This document shows, one piece after another, positions 14,876 to 35,207 of a stretch of DNA of 64,000 bases. Under the pieces are notes generated by a model. That model worked only from the letters and a program-made list of their open reading frames with translations, searched no databases and was not told the origin of the DNA. A program made the position numbers and the translations under genes. Each line of letters starts with the position of its first letter. The first letter of the stretch is position 1. Source of the DNA: Piromyces finnis finn (taxonomy: Eukaryota > Fungi > Neocallimastigomycota); contig MCFH01000099.1 of assembly GCA_002104945.1 (NCBI GenBank), positions 1 to 64,000 on the forward strand. The letters run 5' to 3'.

Positions 14876-14886
14876 GAAAGTTGATT

Positions 14887-15140: not shown

Positions 15141-15179
<39 letters not shown>

Positions 15180-15841
15180 GGCATCAAATATTTTAAACTT
15201 TATTATTAATTTAATTAAAATTATAATACATGTAATAAAAAAATTAAAATTAAAATAAAAATAAAAAAAAATATGTTTAAATAAACACAAATGAATAAAA
15301 ATTGGGTATAATGTATTCTAGTAATTTTAATTAAAGTAAGAAAGCCACTATCATACTAAAGTATAATAATTGTATTTGACTTCCAATGGGACACCGAGCC
15401 AAAGATCAAAATTTTGTCATGGAACAAAATTATGATCTCCATTGGTTGCGCTGGCCCTCCTGGCCTGTCTTACTGTTTCTTCAGCATTGACGCTCTTGGA
15501 TGTTGCTTCAAACCTTTTGAACATTGACCATTGCTGGCCAATAGCAAAAGGCATGATTTTGGTTAGAAGTTCCGCGGTTACCGTCAAGAATGGTGTTCCT
15601 TCATTAGTACCAGATTGAATCTGACGCTTACAAAGTTCTTTCCATTCCCTTGAATTGTAATTAATATTGTTAAAACTTCTTCCCCCAAGAAGGAATTTAA
15701 ATATTTTACTGCACACACTAGAATAATCATACACATTAGTATTCACCGGATTATTAGAACTATTACTATCATTAACTAAATTACTATCTAAATTAGAATT
15801 ATTATCTTCACTATTGTTATCATTACTAATATTATTATTTC
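15141..15841 (-). mobile_element. 5'-truncated LINE copy (~665 bp plus poly(A))
   Basis: T-run 15141-15176, then 3' UTR and ORF C-terminus, breaking inside the AAT-rich coding tract. Confidence 0.92.
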
Positions 15842-16615
15842 TTTTTTTTTTTTTTTTTTTTTTTTTTAACGGCATCAAATATTTTAAACTTTATTATTAA
15901 TTTAATTAAAATTATAATACATGTAATATAAAAATTAAAATAAAATAAAAATAAAAAAAAATATGTTTAAATAAACACAAATGAATAAAAATTGGGTATA
16001 ATGTATTCTAGTAATTTTAATTAAAGTAAGAAAGCCACTATCATACTAAAGTATAATAATTGTATTTGACTTCCAATGGGACACCGAGCCAAAGATCAAA
16101 ATTTTGTCATGGAACAAAATTATGATCTCCATTGGTTGCGCTGGCCCTCCTGGCCTGTCTTACTGTTTCTTCAGCATTGACGCTCTTGGATGTTGCTTCA
16201 AACCTTTTGAACATTGTCCATTGCTGGCCAATAGCAAAAGGCATGATTTTGGTTAGAAGTTTCGCGGTTACCGTCAAGAATGGTGTTCCTTCATTAGTAC
16301 CAGATTGAATCTGACGCTTACAAAGTTCTTTCCATTCCCTTGAATTGTAATTAATATTGTTAAAACTTCTTCCCCCAAGAAGGAATTTAAATATTTTACT
16401 GCACACACTAGAATAATCATACACATTAGTATTCACCGGATTATTAGAATTATTACTATCATTAACTAAATTACTATCTAAATTAGAATTATTATCATCA
16501 CTATTGCTATCATTACTAATATTATTATTTCTATTACTATTATTGTTATTATTACTATTGTTACTATTACTATTGTAATTATTACTATTGTTATTATTAC
16601 TATTTCTATTACTAT
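15842..16615 (-). mobile_element. 5'-truncated LINE copy (~750 bp plus poly(A))
   Basis: T-run 15842-15867, then 3' UTR and ORF C-terminus, breaking in the AAT-rich tract. It is followed by a 36-bp diverged element fragment (16616-16651). Confidence 0.92.
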
Positions 16616-16649
16616 CTTCGGCATTGACGCTCTTGGATGTTACTCCAAA

Positions 16650-16651
<2 letters not shown>

Positions 16652-16689
<38 letters not shown>

Positions 16690-19600
16690 GGCATCAAATA
16701 TTTTAAACTTTATTATTAATTTAATTAAAATTATAATACATGTAATAAAAAATTAAAAATAAATAAAAATAAAAAAAATATGTTTAAATAAACACAAATG
16801 AATAAAAATTGGGTATAATGTATTCTAGTAATTTTAATTAAAGTAAGAAAGCCACTATCATACTAAAGTATAATAATTGTATTTGACTTCCAATGGGACA
16901 CCGAGCCAAAGATCAAAATTTTGTCATGGAACAAAATTATGATCTCCATTGGTTGCGCTGGCCCTCCTGGCCTGTCTTACTGTTTCTTCAGCATTGACGC
17001 TCTTGGATGTTGCTTCAAACCTTTTGAACATTGACCATTGCTGGCCAATAGCAAAAGGCATGATTTTGGTTAGAAGTTCCGCGGTTACCGTCAAGAATGG
17101 TGCTCCTTCATTAGTACCAGATTGAATCTGACGCTTACAAAGTTCTTTCCATTCCCTTGAATTGTAATTAATATTGTTAAAACTTCTTCCCCCAAGAAGG
17201 AATTTAAATATTTTACTGCACACACTAGAATAATCATACACATTAATATTCACCGGATTATTAGAACTATTACTATCATTAACTAAATTACTATCTAAAT
17301 TAGAATTATTATCTTCACTATTGCTATCATTATTAATATTATTATTTCTATTACTACTATTGTTATTATTACTATTTCTATTATTACTATTACTACTATT
17401 GTTATTATTACTATTGTTATTATTATTATTGTTACTATTACTATTACTGTTATTGCTATCTCTACTGACATTATCAATTTCATTATTATTGATAGGACTA
17501 TTGGAATTACGTTGACTGAAAAAATTTAATAGCTGGACTATGGAATCATAATGTTTAATACGGATATCTCTAAATGTTGGACAATCTAATAACCAATGTT
17601 TAATACTTTGATCTCCACACTTGCAACATGGACAGTAGTTAGGACAAACTGGATCAACAAATTTGGCAGCTTTGGCAACTCTAGCATCCAACTTGTATCC
17701 GCTTCTTGCTTTCAATAGCCAGTAGAAGCCATAGGCAAACTCTGGGTACTCATAACATAATTTAATAAAATCTTTAGTTTCAATAAATTTATTATCATCA
17801 TAATATTGCGCTTTGATTGAATTCCCTTTGAGATCTTTCCAATAAAAGTTTTTAACTGCTTTAACATCTCCATGTTTCTTTAATTTTTTATCAAGTGTCC
17901 TACTTGATTTGCACCACGTGTATTTTCTAAATTTAGGAATGTAATTGACAAGGTGTGAGATAATACAATTTGAGTTTTTCCATTTGTTAAAACATCTAAC
18001 CTGAGCTAACGCACATTTGGCTGACAATGGAGGAATATTCAAATCTTTTGAAATAGAGTATAAAGATATAAACGATACAGCTTTATGAACTCCGGCAACC
18101 CATCGTATTCCTTTGTTAACATGCTTCTGAGCAATCCTAGACCTAGCTTTGTTGGATCCAAGTAATGGTGCAAAGTATGAAACTCTGCTAATCACTTGAG
18201 AGTTAAGTACTAGTTTTTTGAAAGGAATAGGAATATTAGGATTTCTTAAGAATTTACTGACTGAGAAAAGTCCTTTCAAAACCTTGTTATTAAGAACTTT
18301 AATTACTGGTTTAAGGGACAGATTCTTATCAAATGGAACACCAAGATAAGTGTAGCAGTCAGTAGTTGGAATGGGTTGTCCTGCTAAGTAAAATGTTGGA
18401 TCTCTCTTGTTCTGATTTTCTATTGATTCAGGACGAATCACCATCGTTGAACATTTCTGGATACCAAATTCCATTTCATTATACAAGGCCCATTCATTAA
18501 CTCTTCTAAGCATCTTTTTTAAGCATCCTCTTGTTGGAGCACAAATAACTATATCATCTGCAAAAAGTCCACCACAGCATCGAGTGTCACCTAAACTGAC
18601 TCCGAGATCTTCACACTCTCTAAATATATCATTAATAAAGAGATTAAAGAGAATAGGAGAAAGAGGGCAACCTTGACGGACTCCTTTTTTCACATCAAAA
18701 GATTTCGAGAATTGTCCATCTAATTTGACATTAGCCTTAGATGTTAAATATAAATTTTTGATAAATTGTAGACTCTTACCTCGGATTCCTAAACAATCTA
18801 ATTTATGGAGAATATTACCGATTGGGACTGAATCGTATGCTTTCCTGAGATCTAAAAAGGCCAAATATGTCTCTTTATTATCTAATTGACGTCTACGGCA
18901 TATTTCTTGGATTGAAATGAAAAGACTGATACTTTCTTCCTTTTTTCGAAAACCAAATTGTTCAGGTCTAATGAAATTATTCTTAAGACCATATTCTGAG
19001 ATTCTAGTGGTGACAATTTTGGAGATCAACTTAATACCATTATTGATAAGTGATATACCTCGATAGTTATCACAATCTGTCAAATCTCCCTTCTTAGGAA
19101 TAGAAACAATACTGGATTCATTCCATGAGTTGGGGAAATCTCCATCCCAAATACGGTTAAATAATTTAAGAATAAAATTTAAACCATGAGCATCATTATC
19201 TGAAGTAGTATTACCAGAAGAATTATTATCTGTAGCATTATTAGAATCATTACTTGATGGAACTAATGCTTTGTAAAATTCAATTGGAATACCATCCGGA
19301 CCTGATGCTTTATAATTTGGAGTAGTGAGGATAGCTGACTTGACTTCATCAATACTAATATCTTGGTTGATATCCCACTCATCAAGCATAGGAAGTGAAA
19401 AACGTTTATTCGTTGGTTCTTCATACCAATGCTCCAAATCAAGACTTACACCACTTGGATCTGATGCAAGATTTTCGAAATGATCATGCCACACATCTAG
19501 TTGTTCTTCCGTAGCAACAACTAATTCTCCATTTTTATTTTTAATTGGTTGAGCAATAAAGAAAGAATCTTTTCCAATTTTTGCAGTTTTCTTGATCCAT

Positions 19601-22110
19601 TTCCAGGCCTTCTTAGGATTATGACTCTTCATATACTCACATCCTGTTTTAATCCAATGAAGATATTCTTGTTTCCTAAATTCATTACATCTTTTGTGGA
19701 TGTAATCAATGAGCTTACGGTAGATTTTAATTCTTTTAATAAATTCATCTATATCATAAATTCTTTCTTTTTTAAATCTCTTATACAACTTCATTTTGAT
19801 TTTTTGGAGATTAAAAATTTGTTGTGAAATATGAAATGAAGACTTTATAACATTATTTGCTGAGGTAATACTGAGCTCGTCTGCAATTGAAAAAGCAGTT
19901 GAAGTAAACTCTTTGGAAAGTTCATCTGTAGAAACATTAGGATCGTTGAATTTTGCTGAAAGAATTTGGAATTTATTATGACTGAGAATAGATTCCTTTT
20001 CCTCAATACATTTTAATCTATTCCATTTCAGAATTTTCTTAGGAACATTAAAGTCATTAGAAAAATCTTCCATAGGAATAATTTTACCATTAATAAGAAG
20101 TGGCTTATGGTCTGATACAGGATAAAAATTATTTATAAATGATCCTGAGTGAATAAGATCTTTCATCTTCGAATTGATAAGAGCATGGTCAATGTCGGAA
20201 GATTGATCACCTCGAGTCCAAGAGATAGTCGACCCTCTAAGCGGAAGAATTTCCCAATCTCCTAATCCATTAGTTGATAACCAGTTGGATAATTTTACTT
20301 TAGACATATTAAAATCACCAACAAGAATCGATGGATGGGATGAATGAGTTTGTAACCACAAGCGAACTTCTAACTTTGCATGATCAACATAGATGTTGTG
20401 ATGACTATGAGGCATATAAACATTTCCAATCGAGCATTTGAATCTATTCCAGAGACTAAAAGTATAAATAGAAATAATATACTTTCCAGAGAAGTTTTCA
20501 AGTGAGGCTTGACACGAATTGTGAAAACCTAAATATAAACCTCTCATTCCTGGAACTGATTCGTCAGCTTTCTTGAAAAAGTGTCTATAGTTTCGCAAAG
20601 TAACACGACAAGGATAATCTGTATTCGATCCAGAACCATTACCAGTTTCTTGGAAACATAAGAATAATGGTTTGAAAATAGCTGTGAAATAGCTAATACT
20701 ATCTCTCTTTTCGTGATTCCACCCATTGGTGTTCCAACTAAGACAAAAAGAAAAGTTATCAGGCTTGTTGGATGAGGAAGAATCGTTGCTATTATTATTA
20801 TTATTAAAGTCATCGTTATTAATGGATGATGCATCAGAGGAATAAGTAGAACTATTATTAGATGGCTGTAAAACTGAAGAACTATCAACTATTGAACTGT
20901 TATCAGAGTTGATAGAACTATTAGAATTAATTGTTGAATGTTGAGATTGAAATTGTGTTTGCTGTAGATCTGGAATATTTTCATGATGGGAAACTTGTTG
21001 AAGATCTTGTTGAAGATCTTGTTGAAGATCGGATTGTTGATGAGATTGTTGAACTGATTGTTGAAATGATTGTTGAATAGAATGTTGATGTTTATTAGAA
21101 ACTAAAATTTTACGTTTGAGAGTGGAAAAAGTGTATTTGTGATTCCTTCTACTACGAGCTGAAAAGGAAATTGAGGTAACTGAAAGTTTCTTCTTTAACA
21201 TGTGTAAGATTTTAATACAATCTTTTGATGAACCATGAACCTTGACTAAGAAAAAGTGATCATTGAAAGTCTGAAAATATTTAACACTAATAACTGAATT
21301 AAATTTATCTTCTAGAATAACCTCGAGTTTTTCCCATAGCATATTTACTGACCATGATCGAATACCACGGATAAAGAAGGAGCGAATATCATCTAAGGGG
21401 ATACCAAAAGACCGGGTACCACGTCTGATATAATTCTTATCTTTAATATAAATGACTGACATGATAATTAATTCTAATTAAAAAAAATTGAATATAAAAT
21501 AAATACTAATAAAAATTACAAATATAACGTATATGGAAAAAAATCTGTCTCTCTCTCTCTTCTTAAAAGTACTGGATAGTACAAAAATTGTTACGATGCT
21601 TTGTTTAAAGTTTCTTTTTTTTTTTTTTTTTTTGAATTCTAGTTGTAAATTTTCTTTAAAAATTCTAGTTTTGGTTTGTTGTTAGTAAATTCGATTCGCT
21701 TTTTGACACTAAAATTGTTTGACTTTACTTTTCATTAAATATTTAAATTGGTAAAAAATTTGAATCAAGAATGTCGACACCAGAAAGCTTGTGAATAGTA
21801 TTTTTACATGATGTAGAGTGAATCAGTCTCTTACAAGAAACAATACAACAATAGCTACATGAATATAAAAATACAATGCAAATGCTAAAGTTGACTACAT
21901 TGGATTCTTACAAGAGAAGAGTAGTACTACATGAATACATGAATAAAAGAAAAAATACAGCAACAAAATGTATTACTCTTCTAATTAAATACTATACAAA
22001 CTTACCTGAATATCAAACATTCAACTTATTCATCAAATACTTAATTCGATGAATAAAATGTTTTTTAATCGCTCAGTACCATGAGCTTAGTCCTAATAAT
22101 TTTCCCTTGA

Positions 22111-22114
<4 letters not shown>
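16652..22114 (-). mobile_element. LINE copy 1: near full length, lacks the 5' monomers
   Basis: Poly(A) 16652-16686, 3' UTR with AATAAA about 22 nt before the tail, intact ORF and 5' UTR ending at ...ttcccttgaagac, where copies 2 and 3 continue into the monomers. Confidence 0.95.
16924..21462 (-). CDS. LINE polyprotein, 1512 aa: N-terminal RRM-like region, Q/S/N linker, APE endonuclease, reverse transcriptase, CCHC knuckle
   Basis: APE motifs SWNTNG, CFQET, GNVYMP, LVGDFN, SDIDH and SDHKPL. RT motifs ASGPDGIP, YRGISL, EQFGFR, AFLDLRKAYDSV, GVRQGCPLSPILFNLFIND, LFADDI and YTYLGV. C-terminal CPCCKCGDQSIKHWLLDC. Confidence 0.96.
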   Translation of the reverse strand: MSVIYIKDKNYIRRGTRSFGIPLDDIRSFFIRGIRSWSVNMLWEKLEVILEDKFNSVISVKYFQTFNDHFFLVKVHGSSKDCIKILHMLKKKLSVTSISFSARSRRNHKYTFSTLKRKILVSNKHQHSIQQSFQQSVQQSHQQSDLQQDLQQDLQQVSHHENIPDLQQTQFQSQHSTINSNSSINSDNSSIVDSSSVLQPSNNSSTYSSDASSINNDDFNNNNNSNDSSSSNKPDNFSFCLSWNTNGWNHEKRDSISYFTAIFKPLFLCFQETGNGSGSNTDYPCRVTLRNYRHFFKKADESVPGMRGLYLGFHNSCQASLENFSGKYIISIYTFSLWNRFKCSIGNVYMPHSHHNIYVDHAKLEVRLWLQTHSSHPSILVGDFNMSKVKLSNWLSTNGLGDWEILPLRGSTISWTRGDQSSDIDHALINSKMKDLIHSGSFINNFYPVSDHKPLLINGKIIPMEDFSNDFNVPKKILKWNRLKCIEEKESILSHNKFQILSAKFNDPNVSTDELSKEFTSTAFSIADELSITSANNVIKSSFHISQQIFNLQKIKMKLYKRFKKERIYDIDEFIKRIKIYRKLIDYIHKRCNEFRKQEYLHWIKTGCEYMKSHNPKKAWKWIKKTAKIGKDSFFIAQPIKNKNGELVVATEEQLDVWHDHFENLASDPSGVSLDLEHWYEEPTNKRFSLPMLDEWDINQDISIDEVKSAILTTPNYKASGPDGIPIEFYKALVPSSNDSNNATDNNSSGNTTSDNDAHGLNFILKLFNRIWDGDFPNSWNESSIVSIPKKGDLTDCDNYRGISLINNGIKLISKIVTTRISEYGLKNNFIRPEQFGFRKKEESISLFISIQEICRRRQLDNKETYLAFLDLRKAYDSVPIGNILHKLDCLGIRGKSLQFIKNLYLTSKANVKLDGQFSKSFDVKKGVRQGCPLSPILFNLFINDIFRECEDLGVSLGDTRCCGGLFADDIVICAPTRGCLKKMLRRVNEWALYNEMEFGIQKCSTMVIRPESIENQNKRDPTFYLAGQPIPTTDCYTYLGVPFDKNLSLKPVIKVLNNKVLKGLFSVSKFLRNPNIPIPFKKLVLNSQVISRVSYFAPLLGSNKARSRIAQKHVNKGIRWVAGVHKAVSFISLYSISKDLNIPPLSAKCALAQVRCFNKWKNSNCIISHLVNYIPKFRKYTWCKSSRTLDKKLKKHGDVKAVKNFYWKDLKGNSIKAQYYDDNKFIETKDFIKLCYEYPEFAYGFYWLLKARSGYKLDARVAKAAKFVDPVCPNYCPCCKCGDQSIKHWLLDCPTFRDIRIKHYDSIVQLLNFFSQRNSNSPINNNEIDNVSRDSNNSNSNSNNNNNNNSNNNNSSNSNNRNSNNNNSSNRNNNINNDSNSEDNNSNLDSNLVNDSNSSNNPVNINVYDYSSVCSKIFKFLLGGRSFNNINYNSREWKELCKRQIQSGTNEGAPFLTVTAELLTKIMPFAIGQQWSMFKRFEATSKSVNAEETVRQARRASATNGDHNFVP

Positions 22115-22141
<27 letters not shown>

Positions 22142-22369
22142 AACGGCATCAAATATTTTAAACTTTATTATTAATTTAATTAAAATTATAATACATGTAA
22201 TAAAAAATTAAAAAATAAAAATAAAAATAAAAAAAATATGTTTAAATAAACACAAATGAATAAAATTTGGGTATAATGTATTCTAGTAATTTTAATTAAA
22301 GTAAGAAAGCCACTATCATACTAAAGTATAATAATTGTATTTGACTTCCAATGGGACACCGAGCCAAAG

Positions 22370-22406
<37 letters not shown>

Positions 22407-22842
22407 GGCATCAAATATTTTAAACTTTATTATTAATTTAATTAAAATTATAATACATGTAATAAAAAATTAAAAATAAATAAAAATAAAAAAAAAATAT
22501 GTTTAAATAAACACAAATGAATAAAAATTGGGTATAATGTATTCTAGTAATTTTAATTAAAGTAAGAAAGCCACTTTTTCCTTTAGAAAAGGAGAGGATA
22601 TAATAAAAAGGTTTCAAAAAAAAAAAAAAAAAGGACAGAAAAAAACTATACTTTTTCCTTTTTTAATCCACTCTTGATTAAATCATCATCTGGTGGCATC
22701 CTCTCCTTTCTTTGTGAATAAAGCAATATTTACACCACAAAAATATAAATATTATGCCAAAGATCAAAATTTTGTCATGGAACAAAATTATGATCTCCAT
22801 TGGTTGCGCTGGCCCTCCTGGCCTGTCTTACTGTTTCTTCAG

Positions 22843-22844
<2 letters not shown>
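22115..22844 (-). mobile_element. 5'-truncated LINE copy (22142-22375 plus 22756-22844) interrupted by a later insertion
   Basis: Removing 22376-22768 restores contiguous element sequence gagccaaagatcaaa-attttgtcatgg...ctgtttcttcagca. Confidence 0.9.
22376..22755 (-). mobile_element. Chimeric insertion: poly(A), 172 nt of LINE 3' UTR and 180 nt of non-element sequence, flanked by the 13-bp TSD gccaaagatcaaa
   Basis: TSD at 22363-22375 and 22756-22768. Element sequence runs 22404-22575 and foreign sequence 22576-22755. Confidence 0.88.
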
Positions 22845-22887
<43 letters not shown>

Positions 22888-23321
22888 GGCATCAAATATT
22901 TTAAACTTTATTATTAATTTAATTAAAATTATAATACATGTAATATAAAAATTAAAATAAAATAAAAATAAAAAAAATATGTTTAAATAAACACAAATGA
23001 ATAAAAATTGGGTATAATGTATTCTAGTAATTTTAATTAAAGTAAGAAAGCCACTATCATACTAAAGTATAATAATTGTATTTGACTTCCAATGGGACAC
23101 CGAGCCAAAGATCAAAATTTTGTCATGGAACAAAATTATGATTTCCATTGGTTGCGCTGGCCCTCCTGGCCTGTCTTACTGTTTCTTCAGCATTGACGCT
23201 CTTGGATGTTGCTTCAAACCTTTTGAACATTGACCATTGCTGGCCAATAGCAAAAGGCATGATTTTGGTTAGAAGTTCCGCGGTTACCGTCAAGAATGGT
23301 GTTCCTTCGTTAGTACCAGAT

Positions 23322-23324
<3 letters not shown>
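22845..23324 (-). mobile_element. 5'-truncated LINE copy (left part); its remainder is at 34654-34716
   Basis: Ends ...ttagtaccagattga before a T-run. The sequence resumes as agtaccagattgaatctgacgcttacaaag... at 34654. Confidence 0.9.
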
Positions 23325-23359
<35 letters not shown>

Positions 23360-23595
23360 GGCATCAAATATTTTAAACTTTATTATTAATTTAATTAAAA
23401 TTATAATACATGTAATAAAAAATTAAAAATAAAAATAAAAATAAAAAAAATATGTTTAAATAAACACAAATGAATAAAAATTGGGTATAATGTATTCTAG
23501 TAATTTTAATTAAAGTAAGAAAGCCACTATTATACTAAAGTATAATAATTGTATTTGACTTCCAATGGGACACCGAGCCAAAAATCAAAATTTTG

Positions 23596-26500
23596 TCATG
23601 GAACAAAATTATGATCTCCATTGGTTGCGCTGGCCCTCCTGGCCTGTCTTACTGTTTCTTCAGCATTGACGCTCTTGGATGTTGCTTCAAACCTTTTGAA
23701 CATTGACCATTGCTGACCAATAGCAAAAGGCATGATTTTGGTTAGAAGTTCCGCGGTTACCATCAAGAATGGTGTTCCTTCGTTAGTACCAGATTGAATC
23801 TGACGCTTACAAAGTTCTTTCCATTCCCTTGAATTGTAATTAATATTGTTAAAACTTCTTCCCCCAAGAAGGAATTTAAATATTTTACTGCACACACTAG
23901 AATAATCATACACATTAATATTCACCGGATTATTAGAACTATTACTATCATCAACTAAATTACTATCTAAATTAGAATTATTATCATCACTATTGCTATC
24001 ATTACTAATATTATTATTTCTATTATTGTTATTATTACTATTGTTATTATTAATATTATTACTATTACTATTACTGTTATTGCTATCTCTGCTGATATTA
24101 ACACATTCATTATTATTGATAGGACTATTGGAATTACGTTGACTGAAAAAATTTAATAGATGGACTATAGAATCATAATGTTTAATACGGATATCTCTAA
24201 ATGTTGGACAATCTAATAACCAATGTTTAATACTTTGATCTCCACACTTGCAACATGGACAGTAGTTAGGACAAACTGGATCAACAAATTTAGCAGCTTT
24301 GGCAACTCTAGCATCCAACTTGTATCCGCTTCTTGCTTTCAATAGCCAGTAGAAGCCATAGGCAAACTCTGGGTACTCATAACATAATTTAATAAAATCT
24401 TTAGTTTCAATAAATTTATTATCATCATAATATTGCGCTTTGATTGAATTCCCTTTGAGATCTTTCCAATAAAAGTTTTTAACTGCTTTAACATCTCCAT
24501 GTTTCTTTAGTTTTTTATCAAGTGTCCTACTTGATTTGCACCACGTGTATTTTCTAAATTTAGGAATGTAATTGACAAGGTGTGAGATAATACAATTTGA
24601 GTTTTTCCATTTGTTAAAACATCTAACCTGAGCTAACGCACATTTGGCTGACAATGGAGGAATATTCAAATCTTTTGAGATAGAGTATAAAGATATAAAC
24701 GATACAGCTTTATGAACTCCGGCAACCCATCGTATTCCTTTGTTAACATGCTTCTGAGCAATCCTAGACCTAGCTTTGTTGGATCCAAGTAATGGTGCAA
24801 AGTATGAAACTCTGCTAATCACTTGTGAGTTAAGTACTAGTTTTTTGAAAGGAATAGGAATATTAGGATTTCTTAAGAATTTACTGACTGAGAAAAGTCC
24901 TTTCAAAACCTTGTTATTAAGAACTTTAATTACTGGTTTAAGGGACAAATTCTTATCAAATGGAACACCAAGATAAGTGTAGCAGTCAGTAGTTGGAATG
25001 GGTTGTCCTGCTAAGTAAAATGTTGGATCTCTCTTGTTCTGATTTTCTATTGATTCAGGACGAATCACCATCGTTGAACATTTCTGGATACCAAATTCCA
25101 TTTCATTATACAAGGCCCATTCATTAACTCTTCTAAGCATCTTTTTTAAGCATCCTCTTGTTGGAGCACAAATAACTATATCATCTGCAAAAAGTCCACC
25201 ACAGCATCGAGTGTCACCTAAACTGACTCCGAGATCTTCACACTCTTTAAATATATCATTAATAAAGAGATTAAAAAGAATAGGAGAAAGTGGGCAACCT
25301 TGACGGACTCCTTTCTTCACATCAAAAGATTTCGAGAATTGTCCATCTAATTTGACATTAGCCTTAGATGTTAAATATAAATTTTTGATAAATTGTAAAC
25401 TCTTACCTCGGATTCCTAAACAATCTAATTTATGGAGAATATTACCGATAGGGACTGAATCGTATGCTTTCCTGAGATCTAAAAAGGCCAAATATGTCTC
25501 TTTATTATCTAATTGACGTCTACGGCATATTTCTTGGATTGAAATGAAAAGACTGATACTTTCTTCCTTTTTTCGAAAACCAAATTGTTCAGGTCTAATG
25601 AAATTATTCTTAAGACCATATTCTGAGATTCTAGTGGTGACAATTTTGGAAATCAACTTAATACCATTATTGATAAGTGATATACCTCGATAGTTATCAC
25701 AATCTGTCAAATCTCCCTTCTTAGGAATAGAAACAATACTGGATTCATTCCATGAGTTGGGGAAATCTCCATCCCAAATACGGTTGAATAATTTAAGAAT
25801 AAAATTTAAACCATGAGCATCATTATCTGAAGTAGTATTACCAGAAGAATTATTATCTGTAGCATTATTAGAATCATTACTTGATGGAACTAATGCTTTG
25901 TAAAATTCAATTGGAATACCATCCGGACCTGATGCTTTATAATTTGGAGTAGTGAGGATAGCTGACTTGACTTCATCAATACTAATATCTTGGTTGATAT
26001 CCCACTCATCAAGCATAGGAAGTGAAAAACGTTTATTCGTTGGTTCTTCATACCAATGCTCCAAATCAAGACTTACACCACTTGGGTCTGATGCAAGATT
26101 TTCGAAATGATCATGCCACACATCTAGTTGTTCTTCCGTAGCAACAACTAATTCTCCATTTTTATTTTTAATTGGTTGAGCAATAAAGAAAGAATCTTTT
26201 CCAATTTTTGCAGTTTTCTTGATCCATTTCCAGGCCTTCTTAGGATTATGACTCTTCATATACTCACATCCTGTTTTAATCCAATGAAGATATTCTTGCT
26301 TCCTAAATTCATTACATCTTTTGTGGATGTAATCAATGAGTTTACGGTAGATTTTAATTCTTTTAATAAATTCATCTATATCATAAATTCTTTCTTTTTT
26401 AAATCTCTTATACAACTTCATTTTGATTTTTTGAAGATTAAAAATTTGTTGTGAAATATGAAATGAAGACTTTATAACATTATTTGCTGAAGTAATACTG

Positions 26501-28089
26501 AGCTCGTCTGCAATTGAAAAAGCAGTTGAAGTAAACTCTTTGGAAAGTTCATCTGTAGAAACATTAGGATCGTTGGATTTTGCTGAAAGTATTTGGAATT
26601 TATTATGACTGAGAATAGATTCCTTTTCCTCAATACATTTTAATCTATTCCATTTCAGAATTTTCTTAGGAACATTAAAGTCATTAGAAAAATCTTCCAT
26701 AGGAATAATTTTACCATTAATAAGAAGTGGCTTATGGTCTGATACAGGATAAAAATTATTTATAAATGATCCTGAGTGAATAAGATCTTTCATCTTCGAA
26801 TTGATAAGAGCATGGTCAATGTCGGAAGATTGATCACCTCGAGTCCAAGAGATAGTAGACCCTCTAAGCGGAAGAATTTCCCAATCTCCTAATCCATTAG
26901 TTGATAACCAGTTGGATAATTTTACTTTAGACATATTAAAATCACCAACAAGAATCGATGGATGGGATGAATGAGTTTGTAACCACAAGCGAACTTCTAA
27001 CTTTGCATGATCAACATAGATGTTGTGATGACTATGAGGCATATAAACATTACCAATCGAGCATTTGAATCTATTCCAGAGACTAAAAGTATAAATAGAA
27101 ATAATATACTTTCCAGAGAAGTTTTCAAGTGAGGCTTGACATGAATTGTGAAAACCTAAATATAAACCTCTCATTCCCGGAACTGATTCGTCAGCTTTCT
27201 TGAAAAAGTGTCTATAGTTTCGCAAAGTAACACGACAAGGATAATCTGTATTCGATCCAGAACCATTACCAGTTTCTTGGAAACATAAAAATAATGGTTT
27301 GAAAATAGCTGTGAAATAGCTAATACTATCTCTCTTTTCGTGATTCCACCCATTGGTGTTCCAACTAAGACAAAAAGAAAAGTTATCAATCTTGTTGGAT
27401 GAGGAAGAATCGTTGCTATTATTATTATTATTAAAGTCATCGTTATTAATGGATGATGCATCAGAGGAATAAGTAGAACTATTACTAGATGGCTGTGAAA
27501 CTGAAGAACTATCAACTATTGAACTGTTATCAGAGTTGATAGAGCTATTAGAATTAATTGTTGAATGTTGAGATTGAAATTGTGTTTGCTGTAGATCTGG
27601 AATATTTTCATGATTGGAAACTTGTTGAAGATCTTGTTGAAGATCTAGTTGAAGATCGGATTGTTGATGAGATTGTTGAACTGATTGTTGAAATGATTGT
27701 TGAATAGAATGTTGATGTTTATTAGAAACTAAAATTTTACGTTTGAGAGTGGAAAAAGTGTATTTGTGATTCCTTCTACTACGAGCTGAAAAGGAAATTG
27801 AGGTAACTGAAAGTTTCTTCTTTAACATGTGTAAGATTTTAATACAATCTTTTGATGAACCATGAACCTTGACTAAGAAAAAGTGATCATTGAAAGTTTG
27901 AAAATATTTAACACTAATAACTGAATTAAATTTATCTTCTAGAATAACCTCGAGTTTTTCCCATAGCATATTTACTGACCATGATCGAATACCACGGATA
28001 AAGAAGGAGCGAATATCATCTAAGGGGATACCATAAGACCGGGTACCACGTCTGATATAATTCTTATCTTTAATATAAAGGACTGACAT
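23596..28089 (-). CDS. LINE polyprotein, 1497 aa (APE-RT-CCHC), intact
   Basis: Near-identical to 16924-21462, with all motifs intact. Confidence 0.96.
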   Translation of the reverse strand: MSVLYIKDKNYIRRGTRSYGIPLDDIRSFFIRGIRSWSVNMLWEKLEVILEDKFNSVISVKYFQTFNDHFFLVKVHGSSKDCIKILHMLKKKLSVTSISFSARSRRNHKYTFSTLKRKILVSNKHQHSIQQSFQQSVQQSHQQSDLQLDLQQDLQQVSNHENIPDLQQTQFQSQHSTINSNSSINSDNSSIVDSSSVSQPSSNSSTYSSDASSINNDDFNNNNNSNDSSSSNKIDNFSFCLSWNTNGWNHEKRDSISYFTAIFKPLFLCFQETGNGSGSNTDYPCRVTLRNYRHFFKKADESVPGMRGLYLGFHNSCQASLENFSGKYIISIYTFSLWNRFKCSIGNVYMPHSHHNIYVDHAKLEVRLWLQTHSSHPSILVGDFNMSKVKLSNWLSTNGLGDWEILPLRGSTISWTRGDQSSDIDHALINSKMKDLIHSGSFINNFYPVSDHKPLLINGKIIPMEDFSNDFNVPKKILKWNRLKCIEEKESILSHNKFQILSAKSNDPNVSTDELSKEFTSTAFSIADELSITSANNVIKSSFHISQQIFNLQKIKMKLYKRFKKERIYDIDEFIKRIKIYRKLIDYIHKRCNEFRKQEYLHWIKTGCEYMKSHNPKKAWKWIKKTAKIGKDSFFIAQPIKNKNGELVVATEEQLDVWHDHFENLASDPSGVSLDLEHWYEEPTNKRFSLPMLDEWDINQDISIDEVKSAILTTPNYKASGPDGIPIEFYKALVPSSNDSNNATDNNSSGNTTSDNDAHGLNFILKLFNRIWDGDFPNSWNESSIVSIPKKGDLTDCDNYRGISLINNGIKLISKIVTTRISEYGLKNNFIRPEQFGFRKKEESISLFISIQEICRRRQLDNKETYLAFLDLRKAYDSVPIGNILHKLDCLGIRGKSLQFIKNLYLTSKANVKLDGQFSKSFDVKKGVRQGCPLSPILFNLFINDIFKECEDLGVSLGDTRCCGGLFADDIVICAPTRGCLKKMLRRVNEWALYNEMEFGIQKCSTMVIRPESIENQNKRDPTFYLAGQPIPTTDCYTYLGVPFDKNLSLKPVIKVLNNKVLKGLFSVSKFLRNPNIPIPFKKLVLNSQVISRVSYFAPLLGSNKARSRIAQKHVNKGIRWVAGVHKAVSFISLYSISKDLNIPPLSAKCALAQVRCFNKWKNSNCIISHLVNYIPKFRKYTWCKSSRTLDKKLKKHGDVKAVKNFYWKDLKGNSIKAQYYDDNKFIETKDFIKLCYEYPEFAYGFYWLLKARSGYKLDARVAKAAKFVDPVCPNYCPCCKCGDQSIKHWLLDCPTFRDIRIKHYDSIVHLLNFFSQRNSNSPINNNECVNISRDSNNSNSNSNNINNNNSNNNNNRNNNISNDSNSDDNNSNLDSNLVDDSNSSNNPVNINVYDYSSVCSKIFKFLLGGRSFNNINYNSREWKELCKRQIQSGTNEGTPFLMVTAELLTKIMPFAIGQQWSMFKRFEATSKSVNAEETVRQARRASATNGDHNFVP

Positions 28090-28735
28090 GATAATAAATT
28101 CTAATTAAAAAATATTGAATATAAAATAAATACTAATAAAAATTACAAATATAACGTATATGGAAAAAAATCTGTCTCTCTCTCTCTTCTTAAAAGTACT
28201 GGATAGTACAAAAATTGTTACGATGCTTTGTTTAAAGTTTCTTATTTTTTGAATTCTAGTTGTAAATTTTCTTTAAAAATTCTAGTTTTGGTTTGTTGTT
28301 AGTAAATTCGAATCGCTTTTTGACACTAAACTTGTTTGACTTTACTTTTCATTAAATATTTAAATTGGTAAAAAATTTGAATCAAGAATGTCGACACCAG
28401 AAAGCTTGTGAATAGTATTTTTACATGATGTAGAGTGAATCAGTCTCTTACAAGAAACAATACAACAATAGCTACATGAATATAAAAGTACAATGCAAAT
28501 GCTAAAGTTGACTACATTGGATTCTTACAAGAGAAGAGTAGTACTACATGAATACATGAGTAAAAGAAAAAATACAGCAACAAAATGTATTACTCTTCTA
28601 ATTAAATACTATACAAACTTACCTGAAAAATCAAACATTCACTTATTCATCAAATACTTAAATTTGATGAATAAAATGTTTTTTAATCGCTCAGTACCAT
28701 GAGCTTAGTCCTAATAATTTTCCCTTGAAGACTAA

Positions 28736-28925
28736 CCAAGCATCCATTGCGCAATGCTTGGATTTAATTCTTTCTACTCTCTCAGTACCATGAGCATGAG
28801 TAGACCCCTTGAGAAATTACATTTATTAAATAAATGAAGGCACATTCCTAAGAGGGCACCAAGCATCCATTGCGCAATACTTGGATTTAATTCTTTCTAC
28901 TCTCTCAGTACCATGAGCATGAGTA
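28736..28925 (-). repeat. 5' tandem monomers of copy 2 (123-bp period; the outer monomer is interrupted by copy 3)
   Basis: ccaagcatccattgcgcaat(g/a)cttgg... starts at 28736 and again at 28859. Confidence 0.9.
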
Positions 28926-31900
28926 TTTTTTTTTTTTTTTTTTTTAACGGCATCAAATATTTTAAACTTTATTATTAATTTAATTAAAATTATAATACAT
29001 GTAATATAAAAAGTTAAAAATAAAATAAAATAAAAAAAAAAACATGTTTAAATAAACACAAATGAATAAAAAATGGGTATAATGTATTCTAGTAATTTTA
29101 ATTAAAGTAAGAAAGCCACTATTATACTAAGGTATAATAATTGTATTTGACTTCCAATGGGACACCGAGTCAAAGATCAAAATTTTATCATGGGAAAAAT
29201 TATGATCTCCATTGGTTGCGCTGGCCCTCCTGGCCTGTCTTACTGTTTCTTCAGCATCGACGCTCTTGGATGTTGCTTCAAACCTTTGGAACATTGACCA
29301 TTGCTGGCCAATAGCAAAAGGCATGATTTTGGTTAGAAGTTCCGCGGTTACCGTCAAGAATGGTGTTACTTCATTAGTACCAGATTGAATCTGACACTTG
29401 CAAAGTTCTTTCCATTCCCTTGAATCGTAATTGATATTGTTAAAACTTCTTCCCCCAAGAAGGAATTTAAATATTTTACTGCACACACTAGAATAATCAT
29501 ACACATTAATATTCACCGGATTATTAGAACTATTACTATCATTAACTAAATTACTATCTAGATTAGAATTATTATCATCACTATTGCTATCATTACTAAT
29601 ATTATTATTTCTATTATTGTTATTATTACTATTGTTACTATTACTATTGTTATTACTACTATTGTTACTATTACTATTAATGTTATTACTATCTCTACTG
29701 ATATTAACATTTTCATTATTATTGATAGGACTATTGGAATTACGTTGACTGAAAAAATTTAATAGCTGGACTATGGAATCATAATGTTTAATACGGATAT
29801 CTCTAAATGTTGGACAATCTAATAACCAATGTTTAATACTTTGATCTCCACACTTGCAACATGGACAGTAGTTAGGACAAACTGGATCAACAAATTTAGC
29901 AGATTTGGCAACTCTAGCATCCAACTTGTATCCGCTTCTTGCTTTCAATAGCCAGTAGAAGCCATAGGCAAACTCTGGGTACTCATAACATAATTTAATA
30001 AAATCTTTAGTTTCAATAAATTTATTATCATCATAATATTGCGCTTTGATTGAATTCCCTTTGAGATCTTTCCAATAAAAGTTTTTAACTGCTTTAACAT
30101 CTCCATGTTTCTTTAATTTTTTATCAAGTGTCCTACTTGATTTGCACCACGTGTATTTTCTAAATTTAGGAATGTAATTGACAAGGTGTGAGATAATACA
30201 ATTTGAGTTTTTCCATTTGTTAAAACATCTAACCTGAGCTAACGCACATTTGGCTGACAATGGAGGAATATTCAAATCTTTTGAAATAGAGTATAAAGAT
30301 ATAAACGATACAGCTTTATGAACTCCGGCAACCCATCGTATTCCTTTGTTAACATGCTTCTGAGCAATCCTAGACCTAGCTTTGTTGGATCCAAGTAATG
30401 GTGCAAAGTATGAAACTCTACTAATCACTTGTGAGTTAAGTACTAGTTTTTTGAAAGGAATAGGAATATTAGGATTTCTTAAGAATTTACTGACTGAGAA
30501 AAGTCCTTTCAAAACCTTGTTATTAAGAGCTTTAATTACTGGTTTAAGGGACAGATTCTTATCAAATGGAACACCAAGATAAGTATAGCAATCAGTAGTT
30601 GGAATGGGTTGTCCTGCTAAGTAAAATGTTGGATCTCTCTTGTTCTGATTTTCTATTGATTCAGGACGAATCACCATCGTTGAACATTTCTGGATACCAA
30701 ATTCCATTTCATTATACAATGCCCATTCATTAACTCTTCTAAGCATCTTTTTTAAGCATCCTCTTGTTGGAGCACAAATAACTATATCATCTGCAAAAAG
30801 TCCACCACAGCATCGAGTGTCACCTAAACTGACTCCTAGATCTTCGCACTCTCTAAATATATCATTAATAAAGAGATTAAAGAGAATAGGAGAAAGAGGG
30901 CATCCTTGACGGACTCCTTTCTTCACATCAAAAGATTTCGAGAATTGTCCATCTAATTTGACATTAGCCTTAGATGTTAAATATAAATTTTTGATAAATT
31001 GTAGACTCTTACCTCGGATTCCTAAACAATCTAATTTATGGAGAATATTACCGATTGGGACTGAATCGTATGCTTTCCTGAGATCTAAAAAGGCCAAATA
31101 TGTCTCTTTATTATCTAATTGACGTCTACGGCATATTTCTTGGATTGAAATGAAAAGACTAATACTTTCTTCCTTTTTTCGAAAACCAAATTGTTCAGGT
31201 CTAATGAAATTATTCTTTAAACCATATTCTGAGATTCTAGTGGTGACAATTTTGGAAATCAACTTAATGCCATTATTGATAAGTGATATACCTCGATAGT
31301 TATCACAATCTGTCAAATCTCCCTTCTTAGGAATAGAAACAATACTGGATTCATTCCATGAGTTGGGGAAATCTCCATCCCAAATACGGTTGAATAATTT
31401 AAGAATAAAATTTAAACCATGAGCATCATTATCTGAAGTAGTATTACCAGAAGAATTATTATCTGTAGCATTATTAGAATCATTACTTGATGGAACTAAT
31501 GCTTTGTAAAATTCAATTGGAATACCATCCGGACCTGATGCTTTATAATTTGGAGTAGTGAGGATAGCTGACTTGACTTCATCAATACTAATATCTTGGT
31601 TGATATCCCACTCATCAAGCATAGGAAGTGAAAAACGTTTATTCGTTGGTTCTTCATACCAATGCTCCAAATCAAGACTTACACCACTTGGGTCTGATGC
31701 AAGATTTTCGAAATGATCATGCCACACATCTAGTTGTTCTTCCGTAGCAACAACTAATTCTCCATTTTTATTTTTAATTGGTTGAGCAATAAAGAAAGAA
31801 TCTTTTCCAATTTTTGCAGTTTTCTTGATCCATTTCCAGGCCTTCTTAGGATTATGACTCTTCATATACTCACATCCTGTTTTAATCCAATGAAGATATT

Positions 31901-34584
31901 CTTGCTTCCTAAATTCATTACATCTTTTGTGGATGTAATCAATGAGTTTACGGTAGATTTTAATTCTTTTAATAAATTCATCTATATCATAAATTCTTTC
32001 TTTTTTAAATCTCTTATACAACTTCATTTTGATTTTTTGAAGATTAAAAATTTGTTGTGAAATATGAAATGAAGACTTTATAACATTATTTGCTGAAGTA
32101 ATACTGAGCTCGTCTGCAATTGAAAAAGCAGTTGAAGTAAACTCTTTGGAAAGTTCATCTGTAGAAACATTAGGATCGTTGGATTTTGCTGAAAGTATTT
32201 GGAATTTATTATGACTGAGAATAGATTCCTTTTCCTCAATACATTTTAATCTATTCCATTTCAGAATTTTCTTAGGAACATTAAAGTCATTAGAAAAATC
32301 TTCCATAGGAATAATTTTACCATTAATAAGAAGTGGCTTATGGTCTGATACAGGATAAAAATTATTTATAAATGATCCTGAGTGAATAAGATCTTTCATC
32401 TTCGAATTGATAAGAGCATGGTCAATGTCGGAAGATTGATCACCTCGAGTCCAAGAGATAGTAGACCCTCTAAGCGGAAGAATCTCCCAATCTCCTAATC
32501 TATTAGTTGATAACCAGTTGGATAATTTTACTTTAGACATATTAAAATCACCAACAAGAATCGATGGATGGGATGAATGAGTTTGTAACCACAAGCGAAC
32601 TTCTAACTTTGCATGATCAACATAGATGTTGTGATGACTATGAGGCATATAAACATTACCAATCGAGCATTTGAATCTATTCCAGAGACTAAAAGTATAA
32701 ATAGAAATAATATACTTTCCAGAGAAGTTTTCAAGTGAGGCTTGACATGAATTGTGAAAACCTAAATATAAACCTCTCATTCCCGGAACTGATTCGTCAG
32801 CTTTCTTGAAAAAGTGTCTATAGTTTCGCAAAGTAACACGACAAGGATAATCTGTATTCGATCCAGAACCATTACCAGTTTCTTGGAAACATAAAAATAA
32901 TGGTTTGAAAATAGCTGTGAAATAGCTAATACTATCTCTCTTTTCGTGATTCCACCCATTGGTGTTCCAACTAAGACAAAAAGAAAAGTTATCAGGCTTG
33001 TTGGATGAGGAAGAATCGTTGCTATTATTATTATTATTAAAGTCATCGTTATTAATGGATGATGCATCAGAGGAATAAGTAGAACTATTACTAGATGGCT
33101 GTGAAACTGAAGAACTATCAACTATTGAACTGTTATCAGAGTTGATAGAGCTATTAGAATTAATTGTTGAATGTTGAGATTGAAATTGTGTTTGCTGTAG
33201 ATCTGGAATATTTTCATGATTGGAAACTTGTTGAAGATCTTGTTGAAGATCTAGTTGAAGATCGGATTGTTGATGAGATTGTTGAACTGATTGTTGAAAT
33301 GATTGTTGAATAGAATGTTGATGTTTATTAGAAACTAAAATTTTACGTTTGAGAGTGGAAAAAGTGTATTTGTGATTCCTTCTACTACGAGCTGAAAAGG
33401 AAATTGAGGTAACTGAAAGTTTCTTCTTTAACATGTGTAAGATTTTAATACAATCTTTCGATGAACCATGAACCTTGACTAAGAAAAAGTGATCATTGAA
33501 AGTCTGAAAATATTTAACACTAATAACTGAATTAAATTTATCTTCTAGAATAACCTCGAGTTTTTCCCATAGCATATTTACCGACCATGATCGAATACCA
33601 CGGATAAAGAAGGAGCGAATATCATCTAAGGGGATACCATAAGACCGGGTACCACGTCTGATATAATTCTTGTCTTTAATATAAAGGACTGACATGATAA
33701 TAAATTCTAATTAAAAATATTGAATATAAAATAAATACTAATAAAAATTATAAATATAACGTATATGGAAAAAAAAATCTGTCTCTCTCTCTCTTCTTAA
33801 AAGTACTGGATAGTACAAAAATTGTTACGATGCTTTGTTAAAAGTTTCTTTTTTTGAATTCTAGTTGTAAATTTTCTTTAAAAATTCTAGTTTTGGTTTG
33901 TTGTTAGTAAATTCGAATCGCTTTTTGACACTAAACTTGTTTGACTTTACTTTTCATTAAATATTTAAATTGGTAAAAAATTTGAATCAAGAATGTCGAC
34001 ACCAGAAAGCTTGTGAATAGTATTTTTACATGATGTAGAGTGAATCAGTCTCTTACAAGAAACAATACAACAATAGCTACATGAATATAAAAATACAATG
34101 CAAATGCTAAAGTTGACTACATTGGATTCTTACAAGAGAAGAGTAGTACTACATGAATACATGAATAAAAGAAAAAATACAGCAACAAAATGTATTACTC
34201 TTCTAATTAAATACTATACAAACTTACCTGAATATCAAACATTCAACTTATTCAACAAATACTCAATTCGATGAATAAAATGTTTTTTAATCGCTCAGTA
34301 CCATGAGCTTAGTCCTAATAATTTTCCCTTAAAGACTAACCAAGCATCCATTGCGCAATGCTTGGATTTAATTCTTTCTACTCTCTCAGTACCATGAGCA
34401 TGAGTAGACCCCCTTGATAAACTCCATTATTAAATAAATGAAGGCACGTTCCTAAGAGGGCACCAAGCATCCATTGCGCAATACTTGGATTTAATTCTTT
34501 CTACTCTCTCAGTACCATGAGCATGAGTAGACCCCCTTGAGAAACTACATTTATTAAATAAATGAAGGCACGTTCCCAAGAGGG
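28926..34584 (-). mobile_element. LINE copy 3: full length, inserted into the outer 5' monomer of copy 2
   Basis: Flanked by the 13-bp TSD atgagcatgagta (28913-28925 and 34585-34597). Its 5' terminus reads CCCTCTTGGGAAC on the minus strand. Confidence 0.95.
29127..33695 (-). CDS. LINE polyprotein, 1522 aa (APE-RT-CCHC); last residues frameshifted relative to copies 1 and 2
   Basis: Near-identical to the other two ORFs. The C-terminus is ...HNFSHDKILIF... instead of ...HNFVP. Confidence 0.95.
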   Translation of the reverse strand: MSVLYIKDKNYIRRGTRSYGIPLDDIRSFFIRGIRSWSVNMLWEKLEVILEDKFNSVISVKYFQTFNDHFFLVKVHGSSKDCIKILHMLKKKLSVTSISFSARSRRNHKYTFSTLKRKILVSNKHQHSIQQSFQQSVQQSHQQSDLQLDLQQDLQQVSNHENIPDLQQTQFQSQHSTINSNSSINSDNSSIVDSSSVSQPSSNSSTYSSDASSINNDDFNNNNNSNDSSSSNKPDNFSFCLSWNTNGWNHEKRDSISYFTAIFKPLFLCFQETGNGSGSNTDYPCRVTLRNYRHFFKKADESVPGMRGLYLGFHNSCQASLENFSGKYIISIYTFSLWNRFKCSIGNVYMPHSHHNIYVDHAKLEVRLWLQTHSSHPSILVGDFNMSKVKLSNWLSTNRLGDWEILPLRGSTISWTRGDQSSDIDHALINSKMKDLIHSGSFINNFYPVSDHKPLLINGKIIPMEDFSNDFNVPKKILKWNRLKCIEEKESILSHNKFQILSAKSNDPNVSTDELSKEFTSTAFSIADELSITSANNVIKSSFHISQQIFNLQKIKMKLYKRFKKERIYDIDEFIKRIKIYRKLIDYIHKRCNEFRKQEYLHWIKTGCEYMKSHNPKKAWKWIKKTAKIGKDSFFIAQPIKNKNGELVVATEEQLDVWHDHFENLASDPSGVSLDLEHWYEEPTNKRFSLPMLDEWDINQDISIDEVKSAILTTPNYKASGPDGIPIEFYKALVPSSNDSNNATDNNSSGNTTSDNDAHGLNFILKLFNRIWDGDFPNSWNESSIVSIPKKGDLTDCDNYRGISLINNGIKLISKIVTTRISEYGLKNNFIRPEQFGFRKKEESISLFISIQEICRRRQLDNKETYLAFLDLRKAYDSVPIGNILHKLDCLGIRGKSLQFIKNLYLTSKANVKLDGQFSKSFDVKKGVRQGCPLSPILFNLFINDIFRECEDLGVSLGDTRCCGGLFADDIVICAPTRGCLKKMLRRVNEWALYNEMEFGIQKCSTMVIRPESIENQNKRDPTFYLAGQPIPTTDCYTYLGVPFDKNLSLKPVIKALNNKVLKGLFSVSKFLRNPNIPIPFKKLVLNSQVISRVSYFAPLLGSNKARSRIAQKHVNKGIRWVAGVHKAVSFISLYSISKDLNIPPLSAKCALAQVRCFNKWKNSNCIISHLVNYIPKFRKYTWCKSSRTLDKKLKKHGDVKAVKNFYWKDLKGNSIKAQYYDDNKFIETKDFIKLCYEYPEFAYGFYWLLKARSGYKLDARVAKSAKFVDPVCPNYCPCCKCGDQSIKHWLLDCPTFRDIRIKHYDSIVQLLNFFSQRNSNSPINNNENVNISRDSNNINSNSNNSSNNNSNSNNSNNNNNRNNNISNDSNSDDNNSNLDSNLVNDSNSSNNPVNINVYDYSSVCSKIFKFLLGGRSFNNINYDSREWKELCKCQIQSGTNEVTPFLTVTAELLTKIMPFAIGQQWSMFQRFEATSKSVDAEETVRQARRASATNGDHNFSHDKILIFDSVSHWKSNTIIIP

Positions 34585-34652
34585 ATGAGCATGAGTAGAC
34601 CCCCTTGAGAAACTACATTTATTAAATAAATGAAGGCACGTTCCCAAGAGGG
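34340..34652 (-). repeat. 5' tandem monomers: two complete units of copy 3 (34340-34462 and 34463-34584) plus the displaced end of the copy 2 monomer (34585-34652)
   Basis: Unit ccaagcatccattgcgcaatgcttggatttaattctttctactctctcagtaccatgagcatgagtagacccccttgagaaactacatttattaaataaatgaaggcacgttcccaagaggg(ca). Confidence 0.92.
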
Positions 34653-35207
34653 AAGTACCAGATTGAATCTGACGCTTACAAAGTTCTTTCCATTCCCTTG
34701 AATTGTAATTAATATTAACTTTATGCTATATACTTTTAAAATTTCCTTTCTACTTTAAAAAAAACTTAAAATGTTTATAATTTCAAACATTCCTACTTTT
34801 CAAACATTCCTAAGTACTTACAACTTCTATTTAAATTTAAGAATCTAATTAAATAAATGAAATTTAATTTGTAATATTAAAAATGTTTTTTTTTTTTTTT
34901 TTTAATTTATTATTGAAATTCTAAAATATGTAATTTTTGTTATTTATATATATATCAAAATGAACATTTATGTAATATTTATAATGAATAATTGATATTA
35001 ACATATGATAATAAACTAAAGAAGATATTTTAATAATAAAAAGAAATTAAATATAAAACCCATATTACTTTATAATACAAGTTCACATAAAAAACATATA
35101 TTAATTACATCAACGTATTTATATATTATTTTTTATATATTTATTTATTTATTTTATTGATTGCTAAATTCTTAAAATTCATCACAATGTCAATATTTAT
35201 TTCAAAT

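Follow-up and report, generated by a model that had tools for sequence, protein, structure and literature searches.

Co-oriented nesting of an APE-type LINE in its own copies within a 21-kb pile-up of the anaerobic gut fungus Piromyces finnis

Insertion of long interspersed nuclear elements (LINEs) into resident copies of their own family, in tandem orientation, has been described before (PMC9942834, on Cnl1; PMC8226300; PMC3446292). In Cryptococcus neoformans and C. deneoformans, Cnl1 forms nested arrays that contain both full-length and 5′-truncated copies (PMC9942834), and its target-site duplications (TSDs) in a reporter gene are absent or 1–12 bp long (bioRxiv 10.1101/2021.08.11.455996). 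The Zepp elements of the green algae Chlorella, Coccomyxa, and Chlamydomonas occur as one cluster per chromosome, at putative centromeres. The site-specific LINEs R1, Tx1, and TRAS/SART combine fixed TSDs with one defined target sequence each. Here, a LINE of the gut fungus Piromyces finnis (Neocallimastigomycota) was analyzed in a 64,000-nt stretch of contig MCFH01000099.1 (positions 1 to 64,000; hereafter, the window), in which a 21-kb pile-up at 13.6–34.7 kb holds about 10 same-strand copies of this single-open-reading-frame element. Like Cnl1 and Zepp, the Piromyces LINE inserts into own-family copies in tandem orientation, and its new copies probably prefer resident copies of the same family in the same orientation. 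Such self-nesting is already known from Cnl1 and Zepp, and a fixed 13-bp stagger as a new targeting system is not supported. A literature search found no description of LINE self-nesting in Neocallimastigomycota.

The locus also differs from each of the described systems. Cnl1 arrays are subtelomeric, whereas the Piromyces cluster lies between ordinary genes; Cnl1 measures 3.4–3.5 kb, compared to 5.66 kb for the Piromyces LINE with its 123-bp 5′ monomers; and the absent or 1–12-bp reporter-gene TSDs of Cnl1 contrast with 12–13 bp in the three clean Piromyces events. Unlike the single chromosomal clusters of Zepp, the Piromyces nest is flanked by genes, and it belongs to another kingdom. No Cryptococcus or algal protein was found among the best 120 homologues of the LINE protein, so the Piromyces LINE is no close relative of Cnl1 or Zepp. 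With R1, Tx1, and TRAS/SART it shares a strict orientation relative to the target and, in its three clean events, a narrow TSD length but, unlike them, it has used at least eight different positions and sequences.

All fragments were mapped on the coordinates of the youngest full-length copy (copy 3, 28926–34584, 5659 bp), and positions on this reference are given below as ref. The LINE lies on the minus strand, and on the plus strand each copy reads as a T-run, then AACGGCATCAAATATTTT, with the 5′ end last; the 3′ end directly following the T-run is AACGGCATC, and the 5′ end finishes with CCCAAGAGGG. The nest that an earlier note had described, from the letters alone, forms only part of the pile-up, which is made up as follows (window coordinates, strand, feature; ORF, open reading frame).

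13623–14872, minus strand: S1, an old diverged LINE fragment (about 85% DNA identity, ORF residues 903–1330) at the left edge of the pile-up
14884–15091, minus strand: O_a, ref 27–237 (3′ part) of the old copy O, which has about 90% identity to the young copies and was the target of later insertions
15092–15138, minus strand: S3, a minimal copy with an interrupted T-run and 18 bp of 3′ end, then ccaatagga
15139–15842, minus strand: S5, a 5′-truncated young copy, 36 T and ref 1–687
15843–16614, minus strand: S6, a 5′-truncated young copy, 26 T and ref 1 to about 771
16615–16651, minus strand: S7/O_b, 37–40 bp of ref 325–366 with 3 mismatches
16652–22114, minus strand: copy 1, 35 T and ref 1–5412, ORF at 16924–21462 (1512 aa)
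22115–22375, minus strand: left part of X4, 27 T and ref 1–256, of a copy truncated at about ref 333
22363–22375, no strand assigned: left copy of TSD i, gccaaagatcaaa
22376–22755, minus strand: insert of pair i, 28 T and ref 1–195 fused to 180 nt of foreign sequence (22576–22755)
22756–22847, minus strand: right copy of TSD i (22756–22768) and the remainder of X4 to about ref 333
22848–23324, minus strand: left part of T, about 40 T and ref 1–463, from a copy whose truncation lies at ref 513; the left copy of TSD ii occupies the last 13 bp
23325–28925, minus strand: main part of copy 2, 32 T and ref 1–5604, ORF at 23596–28089 (1497 aa); the last 13 bp are the left copy of TSD iii
28926–34584, minus strand: copy 3, full length (5659 bp), 20 T
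34585–34653, minus strand: remainder of copy 2, with the right copy of TSD iii (34585–34597), the last 55 bp of the 5′ monomer, and an extra base a (34653)
34654–34716, minus strand: remainder of T, with the right copy of TSD ii (34654–34666), then on to ref 513; unique flank from 34717

The core of the pile-up is a nest of three insertions. Three exact 13-bp TSDs, all inside earlier copies, had been claimed, and the pairs do sit at 22363–22375 and 22756–22768 (pair i), 23312–23324 and 34654–34666 (pair ii), and 28913–28925 and 34585–34597 (pair iii). Each 13-mer is present five to seven times in the window because the targets are themselves copies of the element; recurrence alone is therefore no evidence, and it is the positional logic that counts. 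The left TSD copies directly abut pure T-runs (28 T in pair i, 32 T in pair ii, and 20 T in pair iii) followed by the 3′ end of the element, while each right copy has an element 5′ end immediately before it or, in pair i, that of a chimera. Between the two outer flanks, the overlap is exactly 13 reference positions in every pair: ref 244–256 in X4 (22115–22375, ref 1–256, and 22756–22847, ref 244 to about 333), ref 451–463 in T (22848–23324, ref 1–463, and 34654–34716, ref 451–513), and ref 5592–5604 in copy 2 (23325–28925, ref 1–5604, and 34585–34652, ref 5592–5659). In silico excision of the insert together with 13 bp yielded a collinear element in all three cases. The restored 5′ end of copy 2 aligns to copy 3 with 2 gap columns, compared to 15, 10, and 9 when 0, 5, or 20 bp are removed instead; restored T and X4 align to copy 1 with 1 and 3 gap columns, respectively. 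In addition, Tandem Repeats Finder reports 34517–34653 as a perfect 68-bp × 2 repeat, the footprint that a full-length copy is expected to leave on entering another one at 55 bp from its 5′ end. The mapping, the excisions, and this footprint bear out the insertion order proposed earlier, in which truncated copy T came first, copy 2 second, and copy 3 last. It also holds that each target is element DNA on the same strand and close to an end (ref 256, 463, and 5604 of 5659) and that all three TSDs end in A. A different parse of pair iii, with copy 3 carrying an extra 68-bp partial monomer and copy 2 being a truncated insert in its tail, was rejected because the truncation of copy 2 would then fall, by chance, exactly 13 bp past the start of the irregular duplication.

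The same junctions bear on the possibility that misassembly, unequal recombination, or segmental duplication among near-identical copies, instead of successive insertions, produced the arrangement. The tandem copies in the cluster are 97–99% identical, S5 and S6 have two private variants in common, the end of X4 and the start of S7 overlap by 7–10 bp in the wrong order, and the junctions are read from the assembled sequence, all of which would fit such an origin. However, neither assembly errors nor crossovers would place a T-run between exact duplicates of the sequence that it interrupts, whereas excision restores the element in three of three cases; moreover, copies 1, 2, and 3 differ by about 2%, each with private variants. 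An origin of this kind is thus very improbable. X4 and S7 were also considered as halves of one element, and this was rejected in view of the wrong order and of their types, X4 being young and S7 old. With its 3 mismatches of the old type, S7 is probably the continuation of old copy O.

Evidence for a preference of the LINE for its own copies extends beyond the three nested insertions. Every fragment of the family in the window lies on one strand. Six events have a readable target (S3 into O, S5/S6 into O, copy 1 into O_b, the chimera into X4, copy 2 into T, and copy 3 into copy 2), and all six targets are element DNA entered in the target's own orientation (6/6 on both counts; binomial 1/64 for the orientation). 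One nick, after ccaatggga (ref 237, gggA^C), was used twice, by S3 and then by S5, whose T-run starts there. The insertion points are at ref 237 (twice), 256, about 333, about 364, 463, about 687, 5412, and 5604, and the three full-length copies show no insertion in their 4.7-kb interior. Elsewhere in the genome, five of six junctions recovered in contigs resume in 5′ monomers, three of them at one equivalent position, and the sixth at ref 271; the DNA contigs also contain a T-run after 34531, which is 2 bp away from the position equivalent to site iii. An excess of 5′-truncated targets could account for the bias of insertions toward the 3′ end; it cannot account for the bias toward the monomers.

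Several points weigh against this preference for resident copies. The family is extremely abundant, with 7583 contigs of the DNA run and a summed word depth of 3–5x10^5 compared to about 150 per junction contig (depth is not equal to copy number); in a family with thousands of members, chance alone would give rise to some nests of two or three levels. Furthermore, the window was picked for its nest, the evidence on nested and solitary copies comes from one window plus contig junctions, and the six junctions of the nest are read from the assembly, the contigs being 31-mer based and skipping 28860–29048 as a repeat. Finally, no single model accounts for the four junctions without TSDs (see below) together with the right flank of T.

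A different account is that insertion is nearly random and that nests are what survives, given very AT-rich intergenic DNA, insertions that persist mainly in dead transposon DNA, the loss of inverted nested copies through the instability of close inverted repeats, and a high copy number. It draws support from the very high abundance of the family and from the position of the cluster among ordinary genes; on a rough estimate of about 2600 copy equivalents, with a genome size of 100–200 Mb taken as an assumption, about 5% of full-length copies would by chance contain a nested copy in the same orientation. In contrast, at least six readable events within 21 kb all lie in element DNA and all are co-oriented, one nick position was used twice, and the sites cluster in the 3′-most 700 bp and in the monomers at the 5′ end, none having been seen in the 4.7-kb middle of three full-length copies. 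Inverted inserts of 200–700 bp should be little destabilizing, yet none is inverted. For Cnl1, tandem nesting arises de novo in passaged lines (PMC9942834), which likewise argues against survivorship. Near-random insertion is therefore regarded as unlikely, though it deserves more weight than any other alternative considered here.

The earlier note had gone further, from an invariant TSD length of 13 bp to a self-targeting LINE akin to site-specific elements. Of this proposal, the preference for own, same-orientation copies is supported, while the fixed stagger and the site-specific-like mechanism are not: the sample is three, some junctions have no TSD, and one event probably involves a deletion. 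The TSD lengths are 13, 13, and 12 or 13 bp (pair iii) in the clean events and 9–11 bp in an older pair, and four junctions have none. The older pair belongs to S3 (15092–15129), which is flanked by ccaatggga (left copy at 15083–15091) and ccaatagga, a clean duplication of 9–11 bp with one mismatch. The ambiguity in pair iii stems from extra bases at 5′ ends. Copy 2 ends in gaggg followed by an extra a (34653) before TSD ii, and Logan contigs (31-mer based) of a DNA run of the same organism contain six further nested 5′ junctions at single-copy depth (130–180), each consisting of a 5′ end, extra letters, and same-strand element sequence, as follows.

After 34584, one junction with an extra C and one with an extra G: both resume at 34554
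After 34584, extra G: resumes at 34383, in the preceding monomer
After 34652, two junctions with an extra T: one resumes at 34622 (equivalent to 34554), the other at 34502
After 34653, extra C (following an a): resumes at 29196 (ref 271)

Untemplated 5′ bases are therefore common, and the a that opens the right copy of TSD iii may have the same origin, in which case this TSD would measure 12 bp. A dedicated self-homing LINE with a fixed 13-bp stagger, its specificity provided by an element-bound protein, RNA-DNA pairing, or chromatin, would agree with the three 13-bp TSDs and the strict co-orientation; assuming 13 bp, two of the four additional contig positions (34554 and 34502) also place the nick after an A. 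However, three events, one of them with 12 or 13 bp, are set against an older pair of 9–11 bp, four TSD-less junctions, one probable 87-bp target deletion, and differing target sequences at many reference positions, so that such an element is improbable. A narrow TSD range also occurs in non-specific LINE families.

The clean first-strand nicks are CAAA^AT, TTGA^AT, AGTA^GA, and GGGA^CA, with TAGA^CC added from the contigs, a pattern of A^R/C in which a G frequently lies one or two bases upstream; these nicks differ from the L1 consensus TTTT^AA. Among the targets gccaaagatcaaa, agtaccagattga, atgagcatgagta, and cttccaatggga, a terminal A is the only common feature, and it is weakly significant at best (about 0.05 given the base composition). 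The absence of a common target motif, noted earlier, was thus borne out, none of the targets resembles the element's own 3′ end, and nothing like the one defined target sequence of site-specific LINEs was found. A form of homing that needs no motif would be recognition by strand-specific homology, for instance pairing of the RNA in the ribonucleoprotein with the antisense strand (an R-loop) near transcript ends. It would account for the strict co-orientation, for the bias toward the 3′ 700 bp and toward the monomers at the 5′ end, and for targets that share no motif; as a specific mechanism it is a speculative proposal with a low probability.

Not all units of the pile-up are clean insertions. 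At S5|S6, S7|copy 1, copy 1|X4, and X4|T, units are joined head to tail, with a 5′ end abutting the T-run of the next unit, and no TSD or partner sequence for these four junctions was found in the window. The reference sequence at the four breaks continues with 1, 4, 1, and 2 T, which amounts to microhomology to the T-run. The 5′ end of S6 joins S7 through a tct microhomology and, since the left flank lies at ref 237 and the right side is S7/O_b, the insertion would have deleted 87 bp of target in O. No TSD partner was found for the right flank of T (34717 onward). A fully nested, parenthesis-like parse of the cluster was attempted and fails: right-hand partners are missing for the four head-to-tail junctions, as is a left counterpart to the flank beyond 34716.

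The insert of pair i is of another kind. Inside a single TSD, it consists of 195 nt of LINE 3′ end with its tail and, on the 5′ side, 180 nt of foreign sequence (22576–22755). Read as RNA from the minus strand, the foreign part folds at -46.4 kcal/mol (z = -4.4), and it contains a T17 run; it matches no Rfam family, and no other copies were found in the window. This looks like a template-switch chimera with a cellular RNA, suggesting that the LINE enzyme switches templates. It resembles chimeric retrocopies of the U6/L1 type, in which a LINE 3′ end is joined to an unrelated RNA within a single TSD, and differs from them in that the foreign part has no Rfam match.

The pile-up would thus be explained by repeated retrotransposition of one abundant LINE of an anaerobic gut fungus (Neocallimastigomycota), with new copies landing preferentially in resident copies of the same family and always co-oriented with them. 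Three insertions are canonical target-primed events with a stagger of 12–13 bp: copy 2 into T, copy 3 into the last monomer of copy 2, and the chimera of LINE and foreign RNA into X4. Further insertions entered the older copy O, one of them reusing an earlier nick position. The TSD-less units may be 5′-truncated copies inserted into a neighbor's poly(A)/T tract and sealed by T microhomology or, alternatively, concatemers produced by a reverse transcriptase that switched onto the poly(A) tail of another RNA.

The element has the features of an APE-type (apurinic/apyrimidinic endonuclease-type) non-long-terminal-repeat retrotransposon: reverse transcriptase, endonuclease, poly(A) tail, 5′ truncation, and three clean TSDs. 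Copy 3 contains a single ORF (29127–33695, 1522 aa) with a reverse transcriptase domain (RVT_1, E=1.3e-35) and, N-terminal to it, an APE-type endonuclease (Exo_endo_phos, E=1.7e-7; its 31.7 bits exceed the cut-off of 24.5); PF03372 is also present in homologues of the protein, and a zf-RVT match is weak. Human L1 ORF2p is the best relative with a solved structure (E=4e-33). The 5′ end of copy 3 comprises two 123-bp monomers (34339–34460 and 34462–34584). There are ten 3′ ends in the cluster, eight of them with pure T-runs of 20–40, and the 5′ truncation points range from ref 195 to 771. The nearest relatives are unnamed proteins from metagenomes and the Joint Genome Institute and proteins of the anaerobic gut fungi Orpinomyces and Neocallimastix, followed by LINE proteins of chytrids and Smittium; the best 120 protein matches come from anaerobic gut fungi, metagenomes, Batrachochytrium, and Smittium. 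An exact-protein look-up returned no identical record for the ORF, and a comparison of the LINE 3′ end with metagenome contigs gave 0 matches. A relative of 45% identity on a 20-kb metagenome contig is solitary and has no poly(A) run of at least 12 beside it, which makes it uninformative on nesting.

The ORFs of all three full-length copies are open, and in three RNA libraries made from this organism, contigs match the LINE ORF at 99% identity or more, DNA carry-over being possible; the family is apparently still active. Near the end of its ORF (29190–29200), copy 3 has a 1-nt deletion relative to copies 1 (16930) and 2 (23600), and its ORF runs on for 21 more codons than theirs for that reason. 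Copy 3, the youngest by nesting, also has many private substitutions in the 3′ 700 bp and therefore derives from a different source lineage. The 5′ end of copy 1 (22100–22115) falls 1–2 bp short of the point at which the 123-bp monomer array starts in copies 2 and 3, so that it could represent the start of a monomer-less transcript rather than a random truncation. One contig of an RNA run leaves the LINE ORF behind window position 32283 and continues into TTTTTTTTTTTAAACTTCCGAG, which is not the 3′ end of this LINE family; another poly(A) retroelement is thus located inside a copy of the LINE elsewhere in the genome.

Near the left edge of the pile-up, two independent minimal pieces (15114–15131 and 13595–13615) consist of a T-run and only the last 18–21 nt of the element, with the sequence aacggcat[c/t]aaatatttt; the older piece contains ggc in addition. 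The two pieces end at an identical base, immediately ahead of aaac, which suggests that the reverse transcriptase prefers to abort early, or to jump, at this point. An exact 14-bp repeat, attgtacacatttt, is present at 13468–13481 and 13619–13632 around a 137-bp stretch that ends in T9 and the 21-nt 3′ terminus and adjoins S1, in an orientation unfit for a simple insertion.

Outside one block, the window is very AT-rich (12–33% G+C), and ordinary ORFs lie within a few kilobases of the pile-up on its flanks. The exception, at 1–1041, is the only block of 42% G+C; it holds a 27-bp tandem repeat array, with copies 87–97% identical, inside a 335-aa ORF (67–1074). No tRNA genes (ARAGORN) and no other noncoding RNA (Rfam, gathering threshold) were found in the window, and a tRNA or noncoding RNA gene as the original target, as for the TRE elements of Dictyostelium, was rejected for lack of an ARAGORN or Rfam match.

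Self-nesting LINEs build transposon islands, such as the subtelomeric arrays of Cnl1 and the centromere-associated clusters of Zepp. The Piromyces LINE adds a third independent lineage for comparison: it is abundant, seemingly active, and furnished with clean junctions, it resides in a culturable anaerobic fungus, and its repeatedly targeted 123-bp 5′ monomers are a convenient feature. If homing through R-loops were true, it would provide the first mechanistic handle on LINE self-nesting.

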